Positions 14,991 through 34,578 of a DNA stretch of 64,000 nt are shown one piece after another. Made by a program: the position numbers and the translations under genes. The notes below the pieces were generated by a model, which worked only from the letters and a program-made list of their open reading frames with translations, was not told the origin of the DNA and searched no databases. Within the stretch, counting starts at the first letter, position 1. Each line of letters opens with the position of its first letter. Source of the stretch: Perkinsela sp. CCAP 1560/9 (Eukaryota; Protista; Euglenozoa: Kinetoplastea); contig CBFFSA010000009.1 in assembly GCA_965644495.1 (NCBI GenBank), forward strand, positions 682,001 through 746,000. The letters run 5' to 3'.

Positions 14991-17805
14991 AAAACATATC
15001 TTTAACGATAAAGATACAGTTTCTGTACCTTGTTGAATTATTTTCTTTTCTTTATCTCACTCTTACGTCCCATGGTTGTCTTAACTCGATCTAAGGCTAA
15101 GCAGGTCTCGAACTTCGAACGCGAGGTGAACGCACACACACTCGGCTGCTGGGATCAATTCGACGCAAACAAAGACCTCGTTAAAGGCACGAGTACGTAC
15201 AATGAAGACCTATACACTACACCCCTCCCACCTAATCCTTCAGCTGAATCTTTACGGCGAGCCGACGCGATGGTACTCAGCATCGCGAACTCTAGGGAAG
15301 GTGAGACCCCAGATACAGGGCGCCAGAAGACAAACACGGAAGAGGAACTTTTCTCCAGTGTCCGTCCGACTGAGGACTTCAAATTCCAATTTGCGGGGGC
15401 AGAATCTTCTTCACTCAGCCTATCAAAAACCAAAAATAAGGCTGTGAAGGGGAAGTGCGAACGCCATATCCGGAGGTCACACGACAACGAATACGATTAT
15501 GAAAAAAGGATATTGCTCTTCCCCGATCTCACTCCTGAAGACCTCACCGTCTCTGTGAACGGATGCAGAAAAGGACGGAAAAAGAAGAAGCGCCCCAAGG
15601 GTATCGCTCTATCTCAGCTGAGCAATGAGTCCGGGGCCGACAGCGAAGACCGTGACAACACAGAGCCCAGTACGAATTCACCCGGACCACGCACTCCTGC
15701 ACTCGAATGTGTTAACAGTCTGGCTGAAGAATTGCTTCACAAGGAACAGAACCCGCACTCATCCATGGGTAAACGTAAGCGCCCCCAGCAGGTGTCGAAA
15801 CCTGGGTCATGCGACTCCATGAAAGACGAGAAACTTACGCAAACCCCAAAGACGACACGTGGAAATACACTTATCGACAATGAAAAGACACGGGAATGTC
15901 CTTTCAAGGGATGTACATGGAAAGCAGTGTCTCACGGGGGCCAATGGCAAGCTTTTTATAACCACGTGGCCCACAGACATAGGGACGAGGTTCCTGATAC
16001 CTAGTGGAACGAGGAGGGGCGTTTCCGATGCACCGATTGTAACAAACATTACCACTTAAGCCAGCAGGGGTTTCATGCCGAAAATTGCCCTTTCCGCCGC
16101 TCTTCTCCCTCATCCTTCGCCGCACCTCCCCAGGTAGTGTGCAACTCGGGAAGCCACAATAAAGTGCAAACCGTCGACGGACCCCTGCCGCCCCTGGCAT
16201 CCATATGCTCTTTGCCGATCAACACATCTAAAGATATTCCCAATAGATGTCGGCAGGAGTGGGCGAAAGTCTTCTGCGAGTGTCTCTCTTCCGCCGTACG
16301 AGAAAATACCATCGAAGCCTGGACTCTTCTTGCCATGCTACCGAAGTGCGTGTTACCGGCACCTCATCGTGGGGGGAACAGAGCAAAATTGTCGTATGCC
16401 TCACATGTTCGGAAATGTCTCGCCCGGTGGACGCGGAACGAATTTCTATCTCTTTGGAACGAAGCAAAATCGAGCCTCCAAAGTAAAAAACGCACAGCAC
16501 AAGCACAGAGCCCCGAAGACGAAGAGAAAAAAGCAGCCCTACGAGCTGAGAGACTTGTCCGCGATCGCGAACTTTCCCGGGCCATGACCGCACTAACTTC
16601 TGCGCCACTGGCCCCGGATGACGATGACACATACGCCAAGCTCCAAGCGAAGCATCCGGCCCGATTAGCCGCATCGTCCACAACACTCAATTCCACACCG
16701 GAAGTAGACGTAAAACCTCTCAAAGCAACGGAGGAAGAAGTAGCGGCGGCTCTTAAAACCTTTCACCGGGGATCATCAGGTGGTGCCTTTGGCCTGCGTC
16801 CTGAGCACTTGCAAGCATCTCTTGAGTACCACAATGACGCTTATACGGACCCATTGGGCACTGACAAAATTCACGAACCACATGCTTGCGGGACACATGC
16901 CACTCGAAGTCCAGTGCTACTTTGCCGGAGGCCGCCTATGCGCTTTGAAGAAAGGGGACCGCGACGGGCGCCCAATAGCCGCAGGAGAGACGCTTCGCCG
17001 CCTGGTGAGCAAAGTCGCTTGTTTCTCCGCCAAAACAAGAGCACGTAAACTTTTCAAAGGACACCAATACGGTGTAGCAACGCCAGCCGGATCTGAGCGT
17101 GTTATTCATCTCTGCAGACAGACCTTTGCCTAGCACGTCGACGACGCCGACTTCGTTTTATGCAAAATAGATCTTAAAAACGCATTTAACCGCGTCTCAC
17201 GCGACTGGATCACCGCCTTGACCCGCGAACATTTTCCCGCCCTTAGCTACTACGTAGATTGGTGCTACTCTTCAGAGAGTTCACTTCCTTTCGGCACACG
17301 CACCATTTCGCCATCTGAAGGAGTTCAACAAGGCAACCCCTTAGGTCCTCTACTCTTCTCCCTGGTCTTACGAGAAGTCGCGGCTGAAATTCACACGGTA
17401 GCTCCCAAGCTGGATTTAAATCTTTGGTACCTGGACGACGGCGCTCCGGCTGGCTCATCGTGTGATGTGCGACATGCTTTCGATGTATTAGAAATGAAGG
17501 GCCCGCAATGGGGTTTACACCTCAACGCAGCAAAATGTCAATTAGCCGCTCATCCCTCATCCTCTCATCGTTCTTCTGTTTTCCCCGACCTCCCCGATCA
17601 GAATAAGAATATGGAGGGTAATTTCGATATTTTAGGTAGTCCATTGGGGTCTGCTGAATTCTGCCACAAATTCCTCCTTGACAACGCCCTCGAAATAGCA
17701 AAAGAATCGCTCTTAGCCATTACTCAAATCGAGGACCATCAGGTAGCTCTTTGTCTCATCCGGCACTGCACCGGGTTTTGCCAAATGGTTTACGCACTCC
17801 GTTCG

Positions 17806-20800
17806 CGTTAGCGTTGGAACCTTAAATGTAACTACTCTGAAGCTGAAGGGTGAGGATGAGTTTAGTGTACGAAAGTGTGGGCACCTTTATGAAGTAATTA
17901 ATTTTATGGATACGAAGGGAATACATATCTTAGGCTTACAGGAAACGGGGTACAGATTTTCTCCTTCCGAAAAATTGGATGTACTCTACCGCAAAGTGCG
18001 CTACCGGAATACGGATTATCACTTAAACCTCGTTACAGCACGGGCAAGGGATGCATACAATGGTATGGGTTTCGTCAGCACTCTTCCTTTGACTAAGGTT
18101 TCTAAGATCAGTGAAAGGATAATGTCTGGGGAATTTGAGATGGAGGATGGAGTCGATACAGTTGTCAACGTTTATTCTCCTACAAGGGACGCGTCAGACG
18201 TCGAGATAAAAAAGTTTTATGGTGAATTAGAGCGTTGTTGTCTGGTAGTGCGAGAAAACAATTCACGTCGTCCTCTCATAGTCATAGGAGACTTCAACGC
18301 ACCGCTAACGCACATAACTAATAAGGAACAGGATCCACTTGCAGCCGCACGACTCAAAGGTCTATCATGTTCCATAGATTGCAAATCTGCACATAGCCTT
18401 TGCCCAAGCAGCCGGAAGTGGACGTGTGAATTACCGAACAAAGCTCTGAGGCAATTAGATCACATTTTCATTTGTAGCAGATTCGCATCGGCAATTCAAA
18501 GACACAAAGTGATTAAAGCACCTATTCCTACCACTCATTGTTGTGGCATTGCGAGTATCAGGATAAAGTGGCGAGTTACTGCCCATAAATCGAATAATAG
18601 TCAGCTTTCGTGGTTTCTTCTTCGAAACAGTGATATTAGAACGGAATTCGTCAAAAACGTTCACTGTCAGCGCTTAGCGAATGCTGAGTCAGGAGCGACA
18701 TGGGGAGAACTTGCAAAATGTATGGTGAGTGCTGTGAAAACTTTTAAAAAACCTTCGAAACGAACCGCGAATAAGGAATCGGTAAAGGACTTTAAGATAC
18801 ACGACTTGCGCGGTTTATATCAAAAAAGCAGAAATAAAACCACATTCAATGCGCTATTAAAAGAGCATAAGGAAGAAATTGAAGAAACTATTTCAAACGA
18901 ATGCGTCGAGATTGAAAATCAACTTCGTAAAAATCATGCGAATCCGTGGAGAACTATTCGACAAATTTGTGGGCGGTATAGAGACACATTTAACACAAGC
19001 GGGGGCTCACGAAACAAGAAGCTGCAAGAAATTCGAAATCACTTCATGCGGTTCAGTGGTTATGACTCGGGAAATACGGATATTAGCTTCGAGATGCTTC
19101 CGCCACCGCTCGTTCCAATTTCAGACGAACCATTTTCGGGCGAGGAATTGGTCACTTCTTTGTCTCATTTCAAGAAAGGAAAAACTCCAGGAAGTGACGG
19201 GATACCAATGGAAGCCATACAGGCAATATCAGGGCACCCAGATCTCAGATTACAACTCCTAGAAATCATAAAACAAGTCCATGCAACGGGGGTTACTGAG
19301 GAAGCTTGGCGAATCACGCTACAGATTTTCCCATTCCAAAAAAGGGAGATTTAACAAAGATCGAAAATTGGAGGCCCATATGCGTGGTAAACAGTATAGT
19401 GAAACTTATGAACCATATTATGATACTTTCCCGCATTAGGCCTAGCATAGAAAAATCTCTTCGGGATAACCAATATGGTTTTCGACCCAACCGAGCTACT
19501 GTAGGCGCCCAGATCATCATGAACGAAGTCAAAACTAAAGCATTCAGAGGAGAAGGCCTTTCGGTAGCCTTCATAGATTTCGCGAAAGCTTTTCCCTCGG
19601 TTTCCTTCGCAGCGATAAAAGCTAGCTTAGATGCATTCCGTGTGGGACCTTGTCTATCCAGAACTATCATGTCAATATACAGTAATTTGAAAGGCACCGT
19701 TCGAACTCAGCTTGGCACTACCAAACCTTTCCCTATTGCAACGGGCATACTTCAAGGCGACGTCTTAGCGCCTTATCTTTTTGTAATGGTATTGGATCGT
19801 ATTTTGAACAAAGCACTAGACGACAATTCCGACGGTGTTCTTTTAAGTTCGAGAGGTACTAGGAAAAGGGGTCTTTATGAAAAACGCCTCACTGATATTG
19901 ACTATGCAGACGATATAGCATTGTTTAGCGACACAAAAAGCGGATTAAGCAATATGATAGACAGTGTAGCCACAGAAGCCAGCAAAGCAAATCTACAGTT
20001 AGCCGTTGGTGTAACGAAGACAGCCTGGCTAACGTTCGGAAAATCAACAAAGAACAGTGACAACATTCAAAGCAATGTTGTCGGGAGCATTCCGAAAGTT
20101 CAAACATACAAACACTTAGGGCATCACCGGGAAAACGACTTTACATCAACAATGAAGGAACGTTTAAAGTTAGCTTGGGGTTCTCTTTTTCGTTTGAACG
20201 GGATTTGGTCGTCGCCTTTGAGTGCAGGGACAAAGCTCAGACTATACGATTCCCTTGTTTATCCGGTGTTAAATTTCGGAACGGGGGCCCTCTCAATATC
20301 GCAAACAATGCTCCGACGAATTGACGTTGAGGTAAATAATATGAGGAGAATTGCATGTCAATGCGACAAATTGGATGAATTTGGGATGTGTTACCCGAAT
20401 GCATCTTTATGTCTTGGCACGGAGAAATTTTCAACAATTCACAGGGTACAAAGAGAAAAGCTTGTTGGACACATGCTTCGTCACTCATCTGATTTCCAAG
20501 AGCTCGTCAAGTGGAAACAGCGGACCAACGCACGACAACCTTCCCCAAGCGAGGCTTGCTTGAAGGATTTGGGCATCACCCTTGAACAAGCCTTGGTGTA
20601 TGCAACTGACCGCGAACATTGGTATCAACTAACCGAAAAGTTGCGAAGAGAGCTCGAGCCTATTATTCAATATGAAAAGTGCGGGTCCGTTAGATGGAAA
20701 AATGCCCTGGCAAGGGCGAAAAAACACAAAAGTCCTTCCGAGTTACAATTCGTTGAGGAGTCAGACATCCCTTTTCCAGCATATAAAACTGTGCAAATTT

Positions 20801-21416
20801 ATACAGACGGTTCAGTATTGCCGATGCGGGGCACGGATGAAATTCGAAGCGGTATCGGAGTTGTAGTATTAAAACCTAGATTAAAACCTCTACGAATATC
20901 TGTGACTCTGGAATCTGAAACAATTGAACGAGTCGAAGTAATCAGCTCCCGGAAAAACCTTGCGCATGTCTTTTTCATACAGATTCGTACTATCTTTGGG
21001 AATTTTTTCACATTCTTCGTCATCAGAGGCGCATTGTTGGATACAAGGGGATCACAAACGGAGATTTATTTTATGAACTTGACAGAAAACTCCGTGAACT
21101 AAAACATGAATCATTTTCAATTTTTATATGCAAGGTAAAGAGTCATTGTGGGAACAAATGGAATGAGGAGGCGGATGGGTTGGCACTCATGGCAGCACGA
21201 AAAATATCTCGACCTCCTGTACAGAAAAGGAGAAAGACAACTGAAGACACCGAGGAGTCTCAGACAGACAAATCTTTGCAAAAACTGATTAAAAATAGAG
21301 CCTTAGAAAAGGGAAAGGCGAAAACTTTGCCAGCACCCAAGCGCGGGGCTGAGGCAAAAGGGAGACCCCGAGGGAAAGTAGCGAGAACTGGTGGCAAGAG
21401 GAAGCCCTCTGAGTAG
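17806..21416 (+). pseudogene. APE endonuclease-RT-RNase H polyprotein, frameshifted
   Basis: GLQET, NVYSPT, GDFNA, LDHIF. GKTPGSDGIP, WRPI, NQYGFRPNR, FIDFAKAF, LQGDVLAPYLF, YADD. IYTDGS, plus a KVKSH..NKWNEEAD segment near 21135-21180. Confidence 0.88.
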
Positions 21417-21521
21417 GTGTGATAAGACGGAAGTGTTCTCCGCTGGTAGGCCTGGGGTACCCTGAGGAATATTTGTAAGATTAACGAAAGGTAATGCGTG
21501 TTTTCAGGAGTAGTACACATA

Positions 21522-22263
21522 CAGGGGGGTAAATTGGATGCTGCGGGGGCTCTAAAAATTGCAAAACCTTTCCAATTTTGGAAAATGATAGCGCATTTGA
21601 GAGCTCTCGCAGAGTTCTATGTTTTAGAAAAGGCAGTTTCCCGGGGTATAGGGGGATGTTCAACTGACAAGAAGCCCAAAAACGTCAAAATGCAAAAATT
21701 GTGAGAAGTGTTTTAGATGACTAATAATTACAACTTTCTCCTTTTTTTTCTACTACCATGTCGAAACGCCGCGGCATGCTGTTTAAAGTGTTAATGAGCA
21801 TTTCATGACCATCTGTTTTAATGTAATCAACCGCTCTTTCAATAGAAAACAAAAGTTCAGTCCTATTTTCTGGATTTGTACCTTTTTTAATAAAGGCATC
21901 CATAATTTCCCAATTGTTTTCAATGGGGTTAAGATCTGGGGATTTTGGGGGAAAGTCCAAAACAACGAGATCTATCGGAGAGAGATCCTTTGTTCTGCAT
22001 AGAACGGGATCGCTTTCGCGGCATAAAACTGAGACGAAATGGAGAAAAAACGAAAAAATGAGCAAATTTGGGAAAAACTGCAAATTTTAGAGGGGAAAAA
22101 AAACTTTAAAAGAAATGCCATAAACACAAATGCTTTCTTTTGGGGGTGAAAATAGCGCAAAAACATAGAACTCTGCGAGAGCTCTCGAATGCGCTATCAT
22201 TTTCCAAAATTAGAAGGGTTTTGCAATTTTTTGACCCCCCGCAGGATCTGATTTACCCCCCTG
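21522..22263 (-). mobile_element. Internally deleted Tc1/IS630-like DNA transposon with ~105 bp TIRs
   Basis: CAGGGGGGTAAAT... at the left end and ...ATTTACCCCCCTG at the right. Transposase C-terminus PPKSPDLNPIENNW (21721-22083, minus). TA on the left flank. Confidence 0.85.
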
Positions 22264-22267
22264 TGTT

Positions 22268-22740
22268 TTATCATGCACTTATAGTGCAGAGATTTGCTCA
22301 CCATGTCCTTATCCCGCATACGACGGGTGGATCATGTGAGGTTTCGTCCTCGCCGGAGGTGTGCGGGTGCGGAGAGCTGGCGTCCCAGGTGCAGAGAGCT
22401 CGGTTGTCATGTGCAGGTGCAGAGAGCCGGATGCGTAATCCCCATATTACAGTTTCGGGGGCAATCCGGGTGCAGAGAGCTGCGACAGAGCCGAGGTGCG
22501 GAGAGCTGGACGACCGCCAGGTGCAGAGAGCCGAGTCTCGTCGGCGGAGGACACGTCTAGTGGTCCTCAAGGGAGGCCACCGTGACGCATGGCCCTCTCG
22601 GAGAGGAAAAAGACAAGTCGAAAAAAAGCCGAGAGGGGGAAGCACACTCACTCCAGGGGAGTGAGTCGGGGAGGGGTGAAGTGGTGAAAGCGCGTCCCCT
22701 CTGAATTTGGAGGTGGAAGAGTATAAGTTTGAGGGAACAA
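22268..22740 (-). mobile_element. Second member of the non-coding SINE-like family
   Basis: Shares the head (TTCACCCCTCCCCG.CTCACTCC..GAGTGAGT, GGTGGCCTCCCTTGAGGACCACT) and the 3' ATCTCTGC..hairpin..TGATAA with 13965-14529. No SL seen at its 5' end. Confidence 0.75.
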
Positions 22741-24424
22741 TGTTATATATTCTAACCGACTTATGTCGGTCTATTGGATTGGATTGGATTGGATTACGCA
22801 CTCCGAACCACACCTACATCGGAGCTACGGGATCTATGTCAGCGCCTAGACGACACTGTTCAGACCAGCATAGAAACTTTTTTCCTTCCACTGAGTGATA
22901 CGGCGCGGCGACAAACGCAACGAGACAAACGGTTTAGTGGGTTGGGGCTTCGTTCGGCGGAAGAGCATGCCACATCAGCATATGTGGCTTCAGTCGCCTT
23001 CGCATCAGAAAGAGACGGTTGGGACCCCACTGAAGCAAAAGGTTTTGAAGGGGCTGTGCGGGATGTTAACAGACGCGTTGGACAGAGCATAGTGGACAGC
23101 GAAACCGGTAGAATACCCAAAAGTTGGGTCTCATCAGAACGTCCCTCATTTCGCACGATTGGAACTGACGAGTCGGTTGACGACCTAGTAGTGCCCCGAC
23201 AGCGAGACCTCAGTCACGCCATCTCTTCACATGAGTTTAGGAATGCGCTTGCACACACTGACCCACGGACCAGGGCCAGGTGGATCTCTGAAACTGGGGA
23301 AGGCGCTTCGGAATGGGCATTTGTGCTGCTGTCAAAGAAAGATGGCTTCGCATACACGCCCACGGAGTTCCGGACGCTGGTGCGTTGGTGGCTCGGGGAA
23401 AATATATACCCAGGTCCCCGACCCTGCCCCATGGAGAAATGTACGCAGCCTCTCGGTCCAGAAGGAGACCATACGCTGTCGTGCAAAAGTGGCCACGGCA
23501 TCACCTCTCGCCACAACGCGCTTGCTTCTCAATTTTCGGATGAATGTAAGAAAGCGGGGCTTGCGCCGAAGCGAGAGGTGAACCTAGGGAACAAGGGCCC
23601 GGGGGGAACCCTCACTAGGCCCGGAGATGTCTTCTTTACGAATAGTGGTTTAGGTCATCCTCTCGTACTCGACTTCGCCGTCACCCATGTCCAGCAACAA
23701 AAATATACGGACACAGTCCGTGACGCTAACTGGGTGACGGCGGGGTCGTTTGCGGAGCAGTACGCTACCACTAACAAGGTGAAGCAGCGTGAAGGGGCCG
23801 AGGTAGCGAAAATGAAATTTGCCGCGATGGTCGTGGAGTCCTACGGCTCGTGGAGTCCCAGCGCCATGGCAGTCCTTCGGAAGGTAGCCGCAGATAGGGC
23901 GGCCTACGGAGGAAACACCCTGCTAAAAGGAGAGGTATTGCATCACCTTCTCATCTCCTTGAACGTGACATTGATGCGGTCACAAGCTCGTATGCTCGTC
24001 CTGCGACTCCCTGCAGAGAGCCCCAATGCAGCTCTCTTGGGGTATGGCAAAGAGGATTAGCCGAAAATCGGGACCCCTCGGTTTCTCAGGCAGGCAGGGG
24101 GGGAGGTACCAAGTCCACTAACCGGCGTGCCGTTACGGGTCTTAGTTTTGGTCCGTGGGTGATTTGGTTAGGGATGGATTTCGGGGGGGATTGCTTGCTA
24201 GTTTTGAAATTATTATTTCTGGATGGTAAGATCGATTGCTAGCTTTGAGCGGAAATAATAATAATAATATACAATTGCTAGTTTTGGGCTGATAATTTAC
24301 GGGAGGAAATTTAGACGAGAACAAATACGAATTTGAAAAGACTTCAAAAAAAAGATACATACAAATATAATATAGTTCAGTATTTCTACCACCAAAAAAA
24401 AAAGCCTACCTGGAAACTTGTCTA

Positions 24425-26670: not shown

Positions 26671-29600
26671 TAGCGATAAAGATACAGTTTCTGTACCTTG
26701 TTGAATTATTTTCTTTTTCTTTGTCTACTCTCTTTTTGATGGTAATGAACGAGACACACTCAGCCAACCATCCTGAGGATACACCTTTCGACCCTGGAAT
26801 CATGGATTCTAATCAGAATTTTGTCCACGAAGAAAAATCCCATGAATTGGGTAGTTGGGACCAGTTTAAGGGCAACGAACATCTTATCCGAAGCGCAAGC
26901 ACCTATGACGAGAGTTTATACACTACTGCCATCCCGCAAAATATCCCGCACGATTGGATGCGCCGTGCGCACGCTTTAGAAAAGGATATTGAAACGCCCG
27001 ACATGGGTCACGTACATGACCGAACTGAAGAGGAGATCCATTGTAGTGTCCAGCGTGATATCGATAAGTCTAATAATGTTGATTTCGAAGGAGCCGATTC
27101 GATTTCACACAACCAACTAAGCACATTTAGCAAGGCTGCGAAGATGACCGATGAGTGCTCTAATGTCAATTCTGACGGAACCGATTCGACTTCACTCAGC
27201 CAATTAAGCACATCTAGCAAGGCTGTGAAGACCACTGATGAGGGTCCTAATGTCAACTTCGAGGGAACTGATGCGACTTCACCCAGCCAATTGAGAAAAT
27301 CTAATAAAGCTGTGAAGGCGAGATTTTTACGACACCTTCGAAACTCAGAACACTCTAAGAACTGTTACGAATCCGAAAGCAGTACGGCCACGTTCCCAGA
27401 CCTCACTCCGACGGACCTCATTTCTCATTTCTCCGTTTCTAGCAGTCCAAAGAGGCGCAAGAACAAGAAGTGCTCTAAAAGAAGTACCACCTCACAGACA
27501 TCTTTCAACCAATCAGGCTCCGAAAGCACGGTAGCGACAGAGTCTTCGTTGAACCGGCACCATCACAAGACAGCTGCGTCACATCGGAAGTAAAGCTTAA
27601 GCGGAACCGAGCCACTTTCAAATCCGAGCCTGTTAAATCACCCAACCTCACGCGGACGACAAAAACATCATATAACGCTAGAAAGTGCCCAGTGGAATCA
27701 TGTTTGTGGCAAACCGGTCCTCATGGAAATCAATGGCAGGCGTATTATAATCACATCTCAAACAGGCACGGGGCGGAAGTATCGGACACGTGGTGGGCAG
27801 AGGAAGGCAGATTTCGATGTGCATACTGCAAAAAACATTCCCACTTAGGCAAAAAGGAGTCCCATACGCGACATTGCAAATTTCGCACACTCGCATCCGA
27901 TAACCCTCAGGATCCTTCCCGTGAGTTGAACGACTCCTCCAACCCTACCACAAACGCCGCTGTGATGCCTGAACGCCCCCCGGGTACGAACCCTAATGAT
28001 CAGCCCGATCAGGTGGAGGATGTAGACAACTTGCTGCCGACCTTATCTTCTGTGTGCGCACTGCCGGTGATTACGAGCAAGGATATCCCTTATTGCTGCA
28101 GGGCTGAATGGGCACGAGTACTCACTTCCTGCTTGATGACAGCCACGCTAGATAACACACTCGAGGCGTGGACTCTCCTTGCGATGCTTCCGAAATGTGT
28201 CCTTCCGGCCCCCCGCCGTGGAGGCAGTAAGAAAAAAACCTCTTATGCGTCCTACGTCCGAAAATGTCTTTCCAGATGGAACCAAAAGGAGTACATACCC
28301 CTCTGGAGTGAAGCAATCGCCAGTCTACAGCGCAAACGCAAATCCCCGGCGCAAGCAACCAGCGTAGAAGAAAATGACGACAAGGCAGCTCTACGAGCGG
28401 CTAGGCTTGCCCGAGATGGAGAGCTATCGCGTGCCATGACAGCACTGACCTCGGTGTCACTCGCTCCCCATGACGATGCCACCTACAATAAACTCATAAA
28501 CAAGCACCCTCCACGACTCTCTGGCGAAGACCCAGGCGAACAACTTCCTTCATCGTCCGTAACCCCTCTCAAGATCACACAGGAAAATGTAACCGAGGCA
28601 CTCTCAAGTTTCCACAGAGGATCCTCCGGAGGGGCGTTCGGCCTTCGGCCAGAACATGTGCAGATAGCCATGGCATATCACAACGATGAGCGCATAGATC
28701 CATTGGGAAAGCTCACCAAGTTCGTTAACCATCTTCTTTCCGGAGGCGCGCTGGACGAGGTCCAGCCGCGCTTCGCAGGCGGACGCTTATGTGCACATCA
28801 TAAGGGAGCACACGATGTTCGGCCCATCGCCGCAGGAGAAACCCTCCGGCGCTTCGCAAGCAAGGTTGCGTGTTTTTCTGTCAAATCAAAGGCCTGTCGG
28901 CTCTTCAGGGGACACCAGTACGGGGTTGCAATACCCGCTGGAGCCGAGAGGGTAATACATTTATGCAGATTGACCATGGAGGAACACGTTGATGACGAGG
29001 ACTTCGTCTTATGTAAAGTTGATCTCCGAAACGCGTTCAACCACGTATCACGCAACAGCATTATTTCGCTCACCCGTCAATATTTTCCTGAGCTTAGTCC
29101 CTATGTCGAATGGTGAAAGCTTTGAATTCGCAGTACGGGACGTCAATAGGCGCGCGGGCTATAACTTCGTTTCAAATACCGGGAAAATTCCAAAGCTCTC
29201 GTCTTCCCCACCTGAACAGTTGAACCCAGAGACAGCAAACTCCGACGATATCATGCACAAATGCCGGGCTTACAACGAAGCGCGAAGTAAGCCTGCATAA
29301 CACGGGCCCTGGCGGCGGTCTGACGCGACCGGCGGACGTATTAATCTCAAGTTTTCGAGCGGGCCAGGGCCTTGTAATGGATTTCGCTGTCACACACGTC
29401 CAGCAAACGAAATATACGGATCTAGTCCGTGATGCTAGCGTGGTAACAGCTGGATCCTTTGCGGAAAGATACGCAACGGAACACAAGCAGAAACAACGAG
29501 AAGAAGCCGCCGCAGCCAAACTCCGATTTGCGGCCATGGCCGTAGAATCATACGGCTCATGGTGCCCCAGCGCTATGGCGGTGATCCGTGACATGACAAT

Positions 29601-30260
29601 TGAGCACTCAATGCACTCCGGTAACCTATCCAAAAAAGAAGCCTTACACCGACTTCTTGCTGGCTTGAACGTCACTTTAATGCGGTCGCAGGCACGTATG
29701 ATGGTGCTACGATCCCTACCGACACCTGACCCATCCCTGATAGGCTATGGCAATATGGAAGTGGTGTAGTGACATCCTCTCTTGCATCCTCTGGTCCGGA
29801 TGTTCGTCGTGTCGACAGAGTGTATACTCACGCCTAGCTCGAAAGGGCTAGGTACCCCAAGTGAGATAGTACACGGGTAGTGAATCTCCTCCCCGTCGGC
29901 TAGCATCCTGTTTCGCGACCGTGTCGCTGTCGACACAGGCCCGCGCCTGCGCCCTCCCATATAACAAGGGAAGGGTTCACAAGTCAGGCCGTGGAGAGGT
30001 CGAAAGACCCGGTCCGGAACGCGCGAATGGATTGGGTCTGGATTGCTTGTTTTTATTGTTATTATTGTTATTATTGTTCTTATACTTACGGGAGATCGAA
30101 TTGCTAGTTTTGGGCTCCAAAATATGAAATTGCTAGTTTGATTGCTTGTCTTAAAATCGTATACCCCCCCGATGGACCTACAGGGTTCAAGTATTGGGTA
30201 AAAATATAGAGGCAATGCCGCGGTTCATACTTCTCTCCCCTTATTCATCGCAAAAAAAGA
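26671..30260 (+). mobile_element. CRE family B copy, internally deleted
   Basis: SL 26671-26703, LsmAD-like ORF 26721-27593, ZnF and RT N-half 27692-29116, RLE end 29377-29769, structured 3' RNA, A tail. Confidence 0.88.
29798..30027 (+). ncRNA. Conserved ~230-nt structured 3' element, copy 1 (variant GAAA)
   Basis: Near-identical to 34723-34952, 44040-44269 and 45888-46117. Several helices, GNRA-capped hairpins. Confidence 0.7.
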
Positions 30261-30329
30261 AAAACATATCTTTAACGATAAAAAAAACAATATCTTTAAA
30301 AAACAATATCTTTAGAAAAAACATACCTT

Positions 30330-30475
30330 TAACGATAAAGATACAGTTTCTGTACCTTGTTGAATTATTTCTCTTTTCCTTCCTATTGACTTTACATACA
30401 CCAATGAATGACCCTCGATCAGGGGGGAAGCTCTGGTGTTGTCACTGTGGCACACGTTTTGTCCCACAGAGCCTT
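30330..30475 (+). mobile_element. SL plus the first ~110 bp of a family A element
   Basis: SL 30330-30362, then sequence matching the start of the 36081 copy (MNDPRSGGKLWCCHC). It is cut off by the next SL-headed element. Confidence 0.85.
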
Positions 30476-30552
30476 ACCTTATCTTTAACGACAAAGATAC
30501 AGTTTCTGTACCTTGTTGAATTATTTTTTTCTTTCTTACATTCAACCATTAC

Positions 30553-33500
30553 ATGGGCGTGTCAACGCGTTCTAAAACACGAACGGACTGTAACTTTGGG
30601 AAGGAAGCTGCCTCTCACAAGGTAGGGTCGTATGATCAATTTAAGGCCAACGAACACCTAACGAACGGGAAGAGTACTTACGACGAACTACTTTACACCA
30701 CAGAAATACCGCAGGACCTTTCCTCTGAAAAGATACAGCAAGCGGAAGGCATTGCCATTAGCATAACAAACGCGCCTGCCGGCCCAACACCTGACACAGG
30801 TCACGTTGACGGAATGACTGAGGCAGATATTCATTCCAATGTCCTTCAGGAGGAAAATGTAGGCGCTCGCTTTGGGGGGAAAAATTGCGCTCAGGAGGAA
30901 AATGAGGGTTTTCGATTCGAATACATAGGCTCTGACTCTTCTTTGCTCAGCCAATCCAAGTTATCAAATAAGGCTGTAAAGGAGAAACGCGAACGCGTCC
31001 TCCGGAAAACAAATCCGAACGACTCTCAACAAAACGAGAATGACATAGTATTTCCAGACCTTACTCCAAATGACTTCGATTTTTCGATCAGCACACGGCC
31101 AGGAAGACGAAAAAAGAAGAAGAGCCCTAAGACCACCCAGTATTCTCAAGTGAGTAGTGTTCCCACAAGTGATAGCAGTGACGGGGATGTCACAGACTCT
31201 CCTCCGAAAGACCAAACCCCCGTCCCCCCCGAAGGAAAGCGCAAGCGCCACGATCAAACCCTTAAAAAAGCTTACACCCAACCGAATACACCCAGAAATG
31301 TGGTTGCCACACCCAGAAAGGCACTTTCACAAAGTGACACGTTCCGGAAATGTCCTATTGAGGGGTGTACCTGGAAGACGGGGCCGCACGGTGGTCAATG
31401 GCAATCATACTATAACCACGTAGCCCACAGACATGGAGACGAAGCTCCGGACAGCTGGTGGACAGGGGAAGGAAGATTTCGATGCCGAAAATGTGAAAAA
31501 CATTATGATCTAAGCAAAGAGGACGCTCACATTAAGAATTGCAAGTTCCGCGCTTCCTCGACGCACACTCAACGGAACCCCACACCGAGTGACGACACTT
31601 CTGTCTCGAGTGCTGACGTGCCGCTAGAGAAAAACGAAATTTCCGACGCACAGGCAGACCAGATCACTACCGACGAAACCTATATAATGAACAGTGACAC
31701 ACCTCTTCCAAGCCTCTTTTCCATATGCGCCTTGCCCATTATCACTTGCAAAGATATACCCAACAGCTGCCGACCAGAGTGGGAAAAGGCGCTTTGCGGG
31801 TGTCTAGATTCGGCAATCCGAGAGAATACCATTGAAGCGTGGACTCTCCTCGCTATGCTGCCCAAATGCGTTATACCTGCCCCCCATCGAGGAGGTAGCC
31901 GGGAGAAAACATCGTATGCTTCCCACGTACGGAAATGCCTTTCTCGCTGGTCCAAGAAAGACTTCCTGGCCCTCTGGGATGAAGCTGTCAAGAGCGTCAC
32001 GGGCAAGAAGAGAAGCGTGGAGAAAGCGCAGAGTCTCGAAGAAGAAGAAAAAAAATCCGCACTACGAGCCGAAAGACTCGTACGTGACGGGGAGCTCTCA
32101 CGCGCCATGACCGCACTGACATCTGCGCCACTCGCTCCGGACAATGATGAGACTTACGCAAAGCTTCAGGCAAAGCATCCCCCCCGACTCTCCGCATCAG
32201 ATACACCCAGCCCATCAGTGGACGTGGAACCTCTTAAAGTGACGGAGGATGAAGTATCGGCGGCACTCTCAACTTTTTATCGGGGTTCCTCCGGGGGTGC
32301 CTTTGGTCTGCGGCCGGAACACGTGCAAGTTGCTATACATGGTCATCACGATGGTCAGACCGGTCCTTTGGAAATACTCACAAAGTTCACCAATCACATG
32401 CTAGCCGGAAAAGCACCATTAGAAGTCAAAAGCCACTACGCTGGAGGTCGATTGTGTGCCATGAAGAAGGGGGAACACGACGTACGCCCGATCGCCGCTG
32501 GTGAAACCCTTCGCCGCTTGGCGAGCAAAGTTGCATGCTTCTCTGCCAAAACCAGAGCCCGCAAACTTTTTAAGGGACACCAATACGGGGTCGCTACACC
32601 GGCCGGGGCGGAACGTGTTATCCATCTTTGCCGACAGACATTCGCGGCCCGCGTAGACGATGATAACTTCCTTCTATGCAAAATAGACCTCCGGAATGCC
32701 TTCAACCAGGTGTCCCGTGACAGGTTCACTGATTTAACGCGCATACACTTTCCCGAACTCAGTCATTTTGTAGAGTGGTGTTATTATACAGAAAGTTTAC
32801 TCACGTTCGGTACGCGTACGGTAAAGTCTTTTGAAGGGGTACAACAAGGCGACCCCCTTGGCCCCCTCCTCTTCTCACTGGTTATGAGGGAGCTTGCTTC
32901 GGAAATCCACGCGGCAACACCGAAACTAGACCTGAATCTATGGTATCTAGATGACGGAATACTGGCGGGCGCATCATGCGATGTACGACACGCATTTGAT
33001 GTGCTAGAACTAAACGGCCCGCGATGGGGTTTACATCTGAACGCTGCGAAATGTGAACTCGCTGCGCACCCCGCATCGTCTCATCGTTCTTATGTCTTCC
33101 CCGACCTACCTGGACCGAATAAAAGCACTGAGGGTAATTTCCATATGTTAGATAGCCCTTTAGGGTCAACCGAGTTCCGCCGTCAATTTCTCCTTGACAA
33201 CGCCATTGAACACGCAGAGGACTCGCTGGAAGCCATTACCAAACTCGAGGACCCCCAGGTGGCCCTTTCACTTATTCGGCATTGCACGGGCTTCTGTCAG
33301 ATGGTCTACTCACTCCGTACTACCCCAACGTCGGAGCTCCAGGATCTCTGTCGACGTCTCGACGACGCAGTGCAAGACGCTACCTCACACTTTTTCGGGC
33401 CACTCAGCGACGCAGCAAGGCGACAAGCACAGAGAGGCAAACGGTTTGGTGGCTTGGGACTCCGTTCAGCTGAGGAGCATTCTGCCTCCGCTTATGTGGC

Positions 33501-34578
33501 CTCAGTCGCCTTCGCAGCGGAGAAAGACTTTTGGGATCCAACGGACGCAAAAGATTTCAATGAGGCAGTGATCGACGTGAACAAACGCGCAGGGAAGAAT
33601 ATCGTTGACAATGAAACGGGCAAAATTCTACAAAGCTCGGCCGTTTCAGAGCACCAACCCTTTCAAACCAATCCGATCCAAGAAATAGACAATAAATTGG
33701 TCATACCTCGACAAAGGGACCTGAGCCATGCTATTTCGTCCCACGCGTTCGAACACGCACTCGCCCACGCTGACCCAAGCACGAGGGCTCGGTGGAGCTC
33801 GGAAACGGGGGAAGGGGCGTCGGAGTGGGCTTTCGTGTTGCCGCCCAAAAAGAACGGCTTTGCGTACGCCCCCACGGAGTTTCGCATGTTAATCCGTTGG
33901 TGGCTGGGGGAAACCATCTACCCGGGCCTCCGTCCCTGCCCCATGGAAAAGTGCAAACAGCCCCTAGGCCCAGGGGGTGAACACGCACTGGCATACAAAT
34001 GCGGGCACGGGATCACTGCTCGGCACAGTGCCTTGGTATCCCAATTCTCTGCAGAATGCTCAAAGGCCGGGCTTGCCCCTCAAGGAGAAGTGAGTTTGGG
34101 GAACATAGGTCCGGGTGGCGCACTCACCAGACCTGGGGACGTATTCATTCGAAGTTTCGGTCGCGGTCAGGCCCTCGTACTCGACTTCGCTGTCACTCAT
34201 GTCCAGCAAAAAAAATATACGGACACAGTCCGTGACGCTAACTGGGTGACGGCGGGGTCGTTTGCGGAGCAATACGCGACCGCCAACAAGGCTAAACAAC
34301 GAGAAGAGGCTGAAGCGGCGCGAATGAATTTTACCGCCATGGTGGTAGAATCGTTTGGCTCGTGGAGCCCTAGCGCAATGTCGATCCTTAGGGTGGTTGC
34401 TGCAGGTAGGGCATCCAATGCCAATTCCGGGGATATTTTACCGAAAGGGGATGCTCTACACCGGTTGCCTACATCCCTAAATGTAACCCTCATGAGATCC
34501 CAAGCCCGCATGCTCGTCCTACGACGGCCTGCTGTGGGTCCTGATTCAGCGCTCCTAGGCTATGGGAAAGAGGAGTAG
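30553..34578 (+). CDS. LsmAD-like domain, basic NLS, CCHH/CCHC fingers, reverse transcriptase, RLE endonuclease (1341 aa)
   Basis: YDQFKANE..STYDELLYTT; CPIEGC..HVAHRH; VRPIAAGE, IDLRNAFN, QGDPLGP, WYLDD; RPGDVF..LDFAVTH..VVESFGSW. Uninterrupted, but some conserved residues are substituted (HALAY versus H.LSC). Confidence 0.92.
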   Translation: MGVSTRSKTRTDCNFGKEAASHKVGSYDQFKANEHLTNGKSTYDELLYTTEIPQDLSSEKIQQAEGIAISITNAPAGPTPDTGHVDGMTEADIHSNVLQEENVGARFGGKNCAQEENEGFRFEYIGSDSSLLSQSKLSNKAVKEKRERVLRKTNPNDSQQNENDIVFPDLTPNDFDFSISTRPGRRKKKKSPKTTQYSQVSSVPTSDSSDGDVTDSPPKDQTPVPPEGKRKRHDQTLKKAYTQPNTPRNVVATPRKALSQSDTFRKCPIEGCTWKTGPHGGQWQSYYNHVAHRHGDEAPDSWWTGEGRFRCRKCEKHYDLSKEDAHIKNCKFRASSTHTQRNPTPSDDTSVSSADVPLEKNEISDAQADQITTDETYIMNSDTPLPSLFSICALPIITCKDIPNSCRPEWEKALCGCLDSAIRENTIEAWTLLAMLPKCVIPAPHRGGSREKTSYASHVRKCLSRWSKKDFLALWDEAVKSVTGKKRSVEKAQSLEEEEKKSALRAERLVRDGELSRAMTALTSAPLAPDNDETYAKLQAKHPPRLSASDTPSPSVDVEPLKVTEDEVSAALSTFYRGSSGGAFGLRPEHVQVAIHGHHDGQTGPLEILTKFTNHMLAGKAPLEVKSHYAGGRLCAMKKGEHDVRPIAAGETLRRLASKVACFSAKTRARKLFKGHQYGVATPAGAERVIHLCRQTFAARVDDDNFLLCKIDLRNAFNQVSRDRFTDLTRIHFPELSHFVEWCYYTESLLTFGTRTVKSFEGVQQGDPLGPLLFSLVMRELASEIHAATPKLDLNLWYLDDGILAGASCDVRHAFDVLELNGPRWGLHLNAAKCELAAHPASSHRSYVFPDLPGPNKSTEGNFHMLDSPLGSTEFRRQFLLDNAIEHAEDSLEAITKLEDPQVALSLIRHCTGFCQMVYSLRTTPTSELQDLCRRLDDAVQDATSHFFGPLSDAARRQAQRGKRFGGLGLRSAEEHSASAYVASVAFAAEKDFWDPTDAKDFNEAVIDVNKRAGKNIVDNETGKILQSSAVSEHQPFQTNPIQEIDNKLVIPRQRDLSHAISSHAFEHALAHADPSTRARWSSETGEGASEWAFVLPPKKNGFAYAPTEFRMLIRWWLGETIYPGLRPCPMEKCKQPLGPGGEHALAYKCGHGITARHSALVSQFSAECSKAGLAPQGEVSLGNIGPGGALTRPGDVFIRSFGRGQALVLDFAVTHVQQKKYTDTVRDANWVTAGSFAEQYATANKAKQREEAEAARMNFTAMVVESFGSWSPSAMSILRVVAAGRASNANSGDILPKGDALHRLPTSLNVTLMRSQARMLVLRRPAVGPDSALLGYGKEE

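Follow-up and report, generated by a model that had tools for sequence, protein, structure and literature searches.

Ataxin-2, which is mutated in SCA2 and modifies ALS, has LsmAD as its signature domain, and the hallmark of the CRE clade of retrotransposons is fixed-site insertion in spliced-leader (SL) RNA genes. The published CRE architecture, based on 57 trypanosomatid genomes, consists of a reverse transcriptase (RT), a restriction-like endonuclease (RLE), and one or two zinc fingers, with no LsmAD (PMC12278014). Practically all LsmAD sequences are ataxin-2 orthologues according to a 2026 survey of the family, in which a fusion with RT is not listed (PMC12898128). The literature searched contains no report of an LsmAD-retrotransposon fusion, in agreement with the initial annotation, where it was given as undescribed.

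The window (the whole 64,000-nucleotide stretch of Perkinsela sp. CCAP 1560/9 DNA that was analysed) contains three element copies with such a domain, one of them intact. The features are:

30484-30526 (ends approximate), + strand: SL head of the element, with the kinetoplastid-type core CAGTTTCTGTAC
30553-34578, + strand: intact CRE-like RLE-type non-LTR retrotransposon (copy 1), one ORF of 1341 aa plus stop
30592-30849, + strand: LsmAD domain, aa 14-99 (Pfam PF06741, alignments, dN/dS)
30592-30681, + strand: N-terminal LsmAD segment, aa 14-43, F..E...H..G-[WY]-D-Q-F-x-x-N-x-x-L....S-T-Y, the predicted DHH1/DDX6 RecA2 contact, termed FDF-like
30850-31338, + strand: fast-evolving low-complexity linker with a basic K/R run, aa 100-262 (conservation 0.26-0.49, gap-rich)
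31339-31557, + strand: two zinc-finger motifs, aa 263-335, C-x4-C...H-x3-H then C-x2-C...H-x4-C, read from the translation
32464-33066, + strand: RT core, aa 638-838 (Pfam RVT_1, E 1.2e-15)
33937-34212, + strand: CCHC and RLE of the PD-(D/E)xK type, aa ~1129-1220, R-P-G-D ... D-F-A-V-T ... K, read from the translation
15111-15365, + strand: LsmAD of copy 2, a degenerate element (Pfam LsmAD match at E 2.9e-5, covering profile positions 4-71 of 72)
26817-27059, + strand: LsmAD of copy 3 (Pfam LsmAD E 9.7e-7, 29.6 bits, over the cut-off)

The order in the ORF of copy 1 is LsmAD, linker, two zinc fingers, RT, and CCHC with RLE. The three LsmAD blocks lie where the initial annotation had placed them, all in frame, and in the full copy the block belongs, as had been proposed, to the same 1341-codon ORF as the zinc fingers, RVT_1, and the CCHC/PD-(D/E)xK endonuclease. 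The zinc-finger region has a column conservation of 0.63-0.76 and dN/dS of 0.08-0.11, and the CCHC/endonuclease motifs are kept across element families in the alignment. A sister copy on contig C22 is 96% identical to this ORF. By tblastn mapping, copy 2 spans 15072-17805 and resumes at 22795-24057, disrupted by an in-frame stop, a frame shift, and a nested insertion, and copy 3 spans 26739-29113 plus 29254-29760 with an internal deletion.

Like CRE1/2, SLACS, and CZAR, the element has a single large ORF with zinc fingers, RT, and CCHC plus RLE, ends in a poly(A) tail, and resides in a euglenozoan host with SL trans-splicing. Over 99% of its length, the ORF body has 31% identity to its nearest named database relative, a Diplonema protein with the NCBI name 'Retrotransposable element SLACS 132 kDa protein'. 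Unlike members of the CRE clade, the present copies begin with a complete spliced leader, are arranged head to tail, and have no fixed SL RNA gene site. The SL head of copy 1 precedes the ATG by ~27 nt (another SL copy is found further upstream, at ~30322-30365), and the SL core is placed 45-60 nt upstream of nearly all LsmAD ORFs fetched. An SL block precedes every aligned copy, and in the stacked copies the full SL directly follows the preceding element (its poly(A) tail or other sequence); as judged at the upstream side of the copies, no fixed insertion position within SL RNA genes was seen. The CRE label given initially agrees with the RLE architecture and not with the insertion pattern, and is acceptable in the form 'CRE-like RLE element'; the evidence for grouping the RT with CRE/SLACS/CZAR is the SLACS-named relative at 31% identity. 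In respect to expression, no run recorded as RNA holds the element, and these runs are contigs, uninformative on silence. The only run guessed to be RNA (X5) covers the SL alone, with 30480-30534 at contig ends continuing into unrelated sequence.

The LsmAD domain and selection on it

Profile searches in both directions and the shared motifs show that the retrotransposon protein opens with a genuine LsmAD domain, which covers its first ~100 residues. The Pfam LsmAD matches of copies 1, 2, and 3 have E values of 4.4e-5, 2.9e-5, and 9.7e-7 (24.3, 24.9, and 29.6 bits, with the family cut-off at 25 bits), and copy 1 reaches 26.0 bits when scored as an isolated domain. LsmAD is the sole non-RT Pfam family matched in the window copies. 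Among diverse element N-termini, 20/20 match LsmAD (PF06741) and no other family, the best with E 1.9e-8. A reciprocal search with a profile built from the element LsmADs is concordant: it recovers 1328 proteins at E<=1e-3, and the matches checked below the element copies are of the ataxin-2 type, with LsmAD recognised by Pfam or the motif located ~150-250 residues into the protein. The domain identity proposed in the initial annotation is upheld by the profile check suggested there.

The residues invariant in all three window copies are G, D-Q-F, N, L, S-T-Y, E, L-Y-T-T, and P, then the helix A and I, followed by T-P-D-G and T-E...V. The consensus first given for these copies departs from copy 3 in two details: the helix there has 'DI' for 'SI', and the 'S' of TE.[ED][IL].S.V is C. 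The true start of the domain is at ~30592, ~33 bases upstream of the start first assigned, and consists of F..E...H..G, common to host PBP1. Within W-D-Q-F..N ... E..Y-T-T, the residues W, Q, F, N, E, and Y show no variation among 61 ataxin-2 family sequences, and little or none among 20 element sequences (in window copy 1 the W of W-D-Q-F is replaced by Y). The second half of the element domain comprises a helix, T-P-D-T-G, and an acidic EE..HS.V. The same motif set extends over the whole 72-position PF06741 profile in ataxin-2, Pbp1, and kinetoplastid PBP1: W-D-Q-F-x-x-N, S-T-Y-x-E-x-L-Y-T-T, the amphipathic helix, and the acidic EE..[YHF]-S-x-V end. In contrast to those proteins, the element LsmAD heads an RT protein, without SM-ATX, PAM2, or a long disordered tail, and its region from the helix to the acidic end is shorter and contains the element-specific T-P-D-T-G. 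No SM-ATX match is found upstream of the domain, which begins as early as residue ~14, and PAM2 gives no Pfam match in the ORF at E<=10. Two weak SM-ATX matches elsewhere in the genome are small Sm/Lsm proteins. The AF2 model of the element LsmAD consists mostly of isolated helices (pLDDT 71.5, pTM 0.30); a Foldseek search of this model against the PDB returned no match, and none of the solved structures contains a sequence-recognisable LsmAD. Word-indexed protein searches with ORF residues 10-100 and with host PBP1 residues 140-400 returned no match, blanks that carry no information given the word and length filters applied.

The block is well conserved within a poorly conserved surrounding, as the initial annotation had described (mean column conservation 0.73-0.79 vs 0.26-0.49 in the flanking linker). 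The NG86 dN/dS values of the block, restricted to copy pairs with unsaturated dS, are 0.083, 0.093, 0.155, and 0.184, compared with a linker range of 0.36-0.70 and an RT range of 0.07-0.09, and the block persists in families with saturated synonymous sites. Substitution patterns thus show purifying selection on the LsmAD as strong as on the RT during diversification of the element families.

Origin and spread of the module

The host PBP1 gene is present on contig C3 and encodes SM-ATX (31.4 bits) and LsmAD (49 bits), the latter 59% identical to the element LsmAD over 54 aa. With the element profile, the per-domain score is 87.3 for an environmental PBP1-like fragment and 79.5 for host PBP1, with other ataxin-2 proteins at <=62.6 and diplonemid LsmADs at ~54. 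The tree unites all element LsmADs in a single clade (SH-aLRT 97) adjoining host PBP1 (80); this sister placement is moderately supported (80-81) in an alignment of ~100 columns. As host PBP1 is the nearest non-element relative, these comparisons support derivation of the element LsmAD from the host ataxin-2/PBP1 lineage, in line with the capture originally proposed. A multi-LsmAD source of the diplonemid type, suggested by high summed scores and a similar C-terminal half, was rejected on the basis of the per-domain scores (~54 vs 79.5), a separate clade (support 100), and the absence of any multi-LsmAD gene of this type from the genome.

The genome contains >150 element copies, >60 of them with open frames of >=1100 codons. 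LsmAD is also present at the N-terminus of one clade in a second RLE superfamily, where its bearers form a single clade (83/99) among relatives without it. Between the two superfamilies the RT is 22% identical and the LsmAD 43%, and this difference points to passage of the module from element to element into a second, very distant superfamily. An apparent LsmAD in an APE-RT-RNase H LINE (L036, 1627 aa) was rejected as a native architecture, being a single nested insertion that by chance keeps the frame: the first 256 aa of L036 match a CRE-like copy at 98% identity, and the junction is found once only in the genome.

None of the closest foreign relatives of the element has an LsmAD, and two of them carry a PABP MLLE domain at the C-terminus. 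No RT lies near any of the 80 metagenome loci that gave LsmAD-like matches. Foreign relatives with MLLE, Prim-Pol, ubiquitin, or a 2A-like peptide have the same RT-RLE chassis (36-42% identity) and resemble the present element in that modules of host or viral origin have been gained at the ORF ends, differing from it in the domains and their positions.

Candidate partners of the element LsmAD

Host DHH1 was identified on contig C2 (E 5e-173 to yeast Dhh1, RecA2 lobe at aa 233-408), and its complex with the element LsmAD is predicted with a score of 0.79 (0.78-0.80 between runs), the best of three controls reaching 0.00. At least 74% of the contacts are common to the runs, and the pLDDT of the partner is 53-56. 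The mark used for such predictions is reached by 51/78 solved complexes and 2/108 mismatched pairs, a calibration outside which peptide-like or disordered partners fall. The predicted interface, on the RecA2 lobe of DHH1/DDX6, is formed by LsmAD residues 1-30 (numbered as in row 1 of alignment A2), and the contacts with the lowest error (Y14, Q16, F17, A19, N20, and L23) coincide with residues invariant in the 61 ataxin-2 family LsmADs. DDX6 had been named initially only among pull-down candidates, and yet it is the partner favoured by the complex prediction.

The segment presumably resembles FDF motifs in being a short helical aromatic-D-x-aromatic...N stretch predicted on the RecA2 lobe. It differs from them in its spacing (W-D-Q-F vs F-D-F), in that its binding is a prediction, and in having no Pfam FDF match. 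The known FDF-type motifs for DDX6/Dhh1 are those of EDC3, LSM14/Scd6, PAT1, and 4E-T (e.g. PDB 2wax, 6f9s, 4bru, and 5anr); the Pfam FDF family gave no match at E<=10 in the four proteins scanned. Solved DDX6-FDF complexes are numerous, and the prediction may be an echo of those known to the model; docking on DHH1 accounts for the first 30 residues only, the remainder of the domain being conserved too. The LSm/LSmAD region of ATXN2 binds DDX6 (PMC12898128), and yeast Pbp1 binds Dhh1 (PMC2848848). LSmAD by itself does not bind RNA and folds poorly (PMC11898529), which fits a docking motif.

The preferred explanation starts at the 5' end. Because every copy begins with a spliced leader, the element transcripts are probably trans-spliced and would then be translated as host mRNAs are, with the LsmAD as the earliest part of the protein to emerge from the ribosome. 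The invariant helical W-D-Q-F-x-x-N-x-x-L segment would dock in an FDF-like manner on the RecA2 lobe of DHH1/DDX6 and tie the nascent RT-endonuclease, together with its own mRNA, to a DHH1-containing mRNP of the P-body or stress-granule type. The RNA might in this way be switched from translation to RNP assembly, or be protected, comparable to yeast Ty3 with P-body factors, and the element may also rival PBP1 and Scd6 for DHH1. Yeast Ty3 and Ty1 rely on Dhh1, Lsm1, and Pat1, and L1 ORF1p is found in stress granules. These elements share the proposed logic of RNP assembly in host mRNP granules containing Dhh1/DDX6; they use their own Gag or ORF1p, whereas here a host-derived docking domain would act from inside the RT protein. 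The requirement of Ty3 for Dhh1 and P-body factors is documented (PMC4589538). Taken as a whole, the explanation (a selected PBP1-derived LsmAD, SL-headed transcripts, and FDF-like docking on DHH1 leading to an mRNP), whose DHH1 step leans on one modelled complex, is tentative and given a little less than an even chance.

The main competitor, close to what the initial annotation had proposed, is that the element LsmAD imitates PBP1 and recruits or decoys MKT1, LSM12, XAC1, and PABP, with a gain in translation and stability of the element mRNA. The trypanosome PBP1 complex raises the translation and stability of bound mRNAs. The descent of the domain from the PBP1 lineage is in keeping with such mimicry, LSM12 is a structured-domain partner of fly Atx2 (PMC7946432), and the MLLE of the closest foreign relatives binds PAM2 proteins such as PBP1, so that the same network would have been targeted twice. 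However, the Mkt1-binding region of yeast Pbp1 is mapped to aa 491-549, outside the LsmAD (PMC12345631), and MKT1 was set aside as an LsmAD partner on this ground; the element lacks the PAM2 needed for PABP binding; and the LSM12 AD domain (PF09793) has no match in the genome, a weak negative, as the control genomes are silent too. Recruitment of MKT1, LSM12, and PABP through the LsmAD finds no support here, and we regard PBP1 mimicry in this form as unlikely.

Quite improbable is an association in trans, in which the element LsmAD would dock on an Lsm domain, that of host PBP1 or of some other Lsm protein, and so join or disturb PBP1 mRNPs. The LSmAD of human Atx2 helps the LSm before it to fold and to bind RNA (PMC11898529), and the two always co-occur across the ataxin-2 family (PMC12898128), but the AF2 model of host PBP1 Lsm-LsmAD, with a confident Lsm barrel and LsmAD helices, shows no confident packing between them (pTM 0.40, disordered inter-domain linker). 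An equally small chance is left to a role in placement at the translation machinery or membranes (polysomes, ER/Golgi signals) with no single defined partner; LSm/LSmAD suffices for polysome assembly of fly ATX2 (PMC5485521) and human LSmAD contains putative trans-Golgi and ER-exit signals (PMC12898128), data that concern LSm and LsmAD jointly or short motifs of unproven conservation here. A functionless host gene fragment that supplies a start codon or 5' context, or a chance motif, is scarcely credible and already contradicted: single-copy Pfam scores are close to the cut-off (24-30 bits) and chance in-frame chimeras such as L036 occur in this genome, yet the block evolves at dN/dS of 0.08-0.18 against 0.36-0.70 in the adjoining linker, neutral evolution not being seen in this check across copies, it is retained despite saturated synonymous sites between families, and LsmAD is recovered in all 20 N-termini and in the reciprocal profile search.

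Beyond DHH1 docking by the present element, W-D-Q-F-x-x-N might be an FDF-like dock for DDX6/DHH1 in every LsmAD, captured and exchanged by the elements of this protist to connect their nascent protein and RNA with DHH1 mRNPs, the MLLE-bearing sister elements of other organisms having reached the same poly(A)-mRNP network; a mobile element would then have isolated the minimal functional unit of ataxin-2's domain. This generalisation is doubtful.

Implications for ataxin-2 and for mobile elements

LsmAD is a new addition to the accessory domains of RLE-type non-LTR elements and would represent mimicry of a host mRNP factor by the RT protein itself. The parallel case of MLLE in the foreign relatives suggests that the PABP-PBP1-DHH1 network has been targeted repeatedly. 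Here the LsmAD was excised, placed ahead of the RT, strongly selected in >150 copies, and transferred to an unrelated element lineage; its retention alone at the front of the RT indicates that the domain works on its own. The partner of LsmAD can now be searched for with a small, well-defined bait. If DHH1/DDX6 proves to be this partner, the assignment would extend to ataxin-2.

LsmAD domain at the head of the element protein

Retrotransposon copies are piled up in the window, with one intact ORF, two further 5'-complete copies headed by LsmAD (copies 2 and 3, located by mapping the intact-ORF protein back onto the window), and several 5'-truncated copies.

Element copies in the window and domains of the intact ORF
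30553-34578, + strand: intact ORF (copy 1), 1341 aa (translation)
near the N-terminus of the intact ORF, + strand: LsmAD (Pfam)
aa 263-335 of the intact ORF, + strand: two zinc-finger motifs (read in the translation)
aa 638-838 of the intact ORF, + strand: RVT_1 (Pfam, E 1.2e-15)
near the C-terminus of the intact ORF, + strand: CCHC motif, then a PD-(D/E)xK-type RLE (read in the translation)
15072-17805, resuming at 22795-24057: copy 2, with an in-frame stop, a frame shift and a nested insertion (protein mapping)
26739-29113 and 29254-29760: copy 3, with an internal deletion (protein mapping)

The initial annotation described a conserved block in these three copies, likened it to LsmAD, and placed it in frame with the zinc fingers, RT and RLE of the full copy. 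All three N-termini carry the block in frame and at the coordinates first given (15144-15365, 26850-27057 and 30625-30850), and in copy 1 everything lies within the single ORF. The proposed residue pattern is correct overall, except for two details in copy 3 (DI for SI, and C for S), and the true start of the domain lies ~33 bases upstream of the one first given. The three copies match PF06741 in Pfam with E-values of 4.4e-5, 2.9e-5 and 9.7e-7 (the match in copy 2 covers profile positions 4-71 of 72). An alignment of the N-termini of 20 diverged genome copies, 37-63% identical to the window copy, matches LsmAD and no other family in all 20 members (best E 1.9e-8). Its profile retrieves 1328 proteins at E<=1e-3 from 1.84 billion representative proteins; below the element copies, the matches comprise proteins of the ataxin-2 type, in which the domain lies 150-250 residues into the chain, and some multi-LsmAD proteins. 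By these profile comparisons, the N-terminal block is a genuine LsmAD. The domain is absent from the solved structures searched, and its AF2 model consists of helices, has a low pTM and finds no match in the PDB; such a model agrees with the reported poor folding and lack of RNA binding of human LSmAD by itself (PMC11898529).

Column conservation over 17 full-length copies is 0.73-0.79 for the LsmAD block, on a par with RT, while the gap-rich linker behind it reaches 0.26-0.49, in line with the poorly conserved low-complexity surroundings noted at the outset. The dN/dS values (Nei-Gojobori, pairs with unsaturated synonymous sites only) are 0.083, 0.093, 0.155 and 0.184 for LsmAD and 0.07-0.09 for RT, versus 0.36-0.70 for the linker, so that the block does not evolve neutrally relative to the linker, and selection on the element LsmAD holds on these substitution patterns. 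The 21 Mb genome contains >150 matches to the element, including >60 that lie in open frames with a length of 1100 codons or more.

Every aligned copy is headed by a shared ~40-nt block with the kinetoplastid spliced-leader (SL) core CAGTTTCTGTAC. The block follows on from the preceding element, either from its poly(A) tail or from other sequence in it, and the ATG lies ~27 nt downstream. Nearly all of the retrieved LsmAD ORFs are preceded by the core at a distance of 45-60 nt. Two SL copies ~160 nt apart lie upstream of the intact ORF (30322-30365 and 30484-30526), preceded by short A-rich, SL-like fragments. In a putative RNA run, the SL stretch occurs at contig ends and is joined there to unrelated sequences, as expected of a spliced leader; no contig of this run covers ORF 30553-34578. 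From the SL at copy starts and contig ends we infer that trans-spliced mRNAs are the templates for copying of the elements. The LsmAD would be the first-made part of the element protein.

Origin and transfer of the domain

A single true PBP1/ataxin-2 gene is present in the genome (contig C3, SM-ATX and LsmAD); its LsmAD is 59% identical to that of the window copy over 54 residues and has in common with it an upstream E..SH..G extension. Scored with the element profile (per-domain bits), an environmental PBP1-like fragment reaches 87.3 bits and the host PBP1 79.5, any other ataxin-2 at most 62.6. In a tree of 92 domains, the element LsmADs form a single clade (SH-aLRT 97) adjoining the host PBP1 and the environmental fragment (support 80; ~100 columns). 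The capture proposed in the initial annotation is supported by both scores and tree, and the best reading is a single capture from the PBP1 lineage, preceding the radiation of the element families, with a moderately supported sister position based on ~100 columns. The diplonemid multi-LsmAD proteins were rejected as the source, given ~54 bits for each domain, a separate clade (support 100), and no gene of this type in this genome.

A second, large superfamily is represented by the L048 copy type (1201 aa; RT, CCHC and RLE, without N-terminal zinc fingers). Between L048 and the window protein, identity is only 22% in the body, yet 43% in the LsmAD. The domain heads three subfamilies of this superfamily (L048, L066 and L053); the remaining ones (L061-L065 and L067) have a different basic N-terminus in its place. 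In L061, L062, L063 and L065, a conserved K-P-K-K-T-P-R-I-R-[IV]-[IV]-[GS]... W-A-D-H is found where the sister clade has LsmAD. In the body tree, very long branches divide the two superfamilies, and within the second the subfamilies with LsmAD group together as a single clade (83/99), surrounded by clades lacking it; the domain tree nests the LsmADs of these subfamilies within the element clade. Vertical descent from a common ancestor of both superfamilies cannot yield 43% LsmAD identity, since in the first superfamily the domain evolves no more slowly than RT. These rates point to transfer of the LsmAD module between elements of the two superfamilies.

An uninterrupted 1627-codon ORF at locus L036 (L036:302-5182; G000:C41:55401-60281) joins LsmAD, a zinc finger, APE endonuclease, RT and RNase H. 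It is an APE-RT-RNase H LINE inserted in a CRE-like copy with the frame kept; the junction is found once in the genome, and L036 is therefore an accident, a single nested insertion, rather than an element family. It may illustrate a route by which a 5' module could pass to another element. Part of the insertion splitting copy 2 (17805-22795) is an APE-type LINE with 71% identity to the LINE part of L036; the match lies at C9:699804 (window ~17804).

Candidate partner of the domain

The W-D-Q-F-x-x-N-x-x-L stretch of the domain is similar to the FDF motifs by which EDC3 and LSM14 bind the RecA2 lobe of DDX6. The LSm/LSmAD region of ATXN2 has been reported as a DDX6 binder (PMC12898128), and Dhh1 is bound by Pbp1 (PMC2848848). 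The host DHH1 was identified (E 5e-173 to yeast Dhh1), with a RecA2 lobe ~80% identical to that of human DDX6, as judged by eye from the alignment. Complex prediction of this lobe with the window LsmAD scored 0.79 (runs 0.78-0.80; best of three controls 0.00), passing a mark that 51 of 78 solved complexes attain, as do 2 of 108 mismatched pairs. Between runs, at least 74% of the contacts are the same, and the partner pLDDT is 53-56. Only LsmAD residues 1-30 form the predicted interface, with the lowest-error contacts at Y14 (W elsewhere), Q16, F17, A19, N20 and L23; the W, Q, F and N among them are invariant in 61 ataxin-2 family sequences. On DHH1, the interface adjoins residues aligned with human Q320 and H323, which presumably belong to the FDF-binding patch. 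Because a pass may derive from solved look-alike complexes that the predictor has learned, the prediction shows a resemblance to FDF-type ligands rather than binding.

The element LsmAD would dock on the RecA2 lobe of host DHH1, a mechanism that we tentatively place first, ahead of PBP1 mimicry, at somewhat under an even chance. There is precedent in the retroelement Ty3, which requires Dhh1 and P-body factors (PMC4589538). A host Scd6/LSM14 homologue (L056:3291-4223, G000:C5; Pfam LSM14 E 8.8e-24) carries an E-D-F-D-F motif, and is proposed as the natural competitor for this surface.

Next comes the mimicry of PBP1 favored by the initial annotation, by which the LsmAD would recruit MKT1, LSM12 and PABP. 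It fares poorly: the Mkt1-binding region of yeast Pbp1 (aa 491-549) is outside LsmAD (PMC12345631), PABP binding needs a PAM2, which the element does not have, and LSM12 was not found in this genome, a weak negative. An AF2 model of the host PBP1 Lsm-LsmAD, in respect to packing of LsmAD on the Lsm fold, reached a pTM of only 0.40.

Distribution and accessory domains of related elements

Of the 118 best relatives that the RT-RLE body has in a collection of 5.8 billion proteins, LsmAD occurs only in proteins of one ENA assembly, which is of the same species (its protein P0008 and one copy in this genome share 99% identity). The closest foreign relatives, from metagenomes (36-42% identity), have no LsmAD, and none of 80 metagenome loci with LsmAD-like matches has an RT nearby. 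In a survey of 57 trypanosomatid genomes, curated and dating from 2025, CRE elements are drawn as RT, RLE and zinc fingers (PMC12278014), whereas the element here is also headed by LsmAD. The fusion was initially considered undescribed, and the literature search found no paper on LsmAD joined to a retrotransposon; a 2026 survey of ataxin-2 chimeras, which regards practically all LsmAD sequences as ataxin-2 orthologues, mentions no RT or transposon (PMC12898128). Against that statement, diplonemid proteins (Diplonema papillatum DIPPA_14428 (P0015), P0021, P0023, P0025 and P0030) show another architecture outside ataxin-2, with two or three LsmAD, RRM-like and PDZ domains and without Lsm.

The two closest foreign body relatives, P0182 and P0184 of JGI metagenome 3300050212 (loci L073:1308-4991 and L074:529-5661), are 39-41% identical to the body over 99% of its length, and carry a C-terminal MLLE (Pfam, 49.3 and 46.8 bits, cut-off 27). 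In PABP, MLLE is the module to which PAM2 proteins bind, PBP1 among them; the literature search turned up no paper describing MLLE in a retrotransposon. Between P0182 and P0184, synonymous sites are saturated in RT and RLE (pS >0.7), whereas MLLE and tail show a pS of 0.05-0.10, with a dN/dS near 1 that, from two sequences, cannot show selection. Judged by these sites, this 3' module is one recently shared or swapped between the two elements. Further domains and motifs in relatives with this chassis are a 2A-like GDVEKNPGP (at the P0184 N-terminus), Prim-Pol (P0187 and P0197) or three ubiquitin repeats ahead of RT (P0192). The RT-RLE chassis readily acquires foreign domains, and has done so twice from the PABP-PBP1 network, with LsmAD at the N-terminus of the element here and MLLE at the C-terminus of its relatives.
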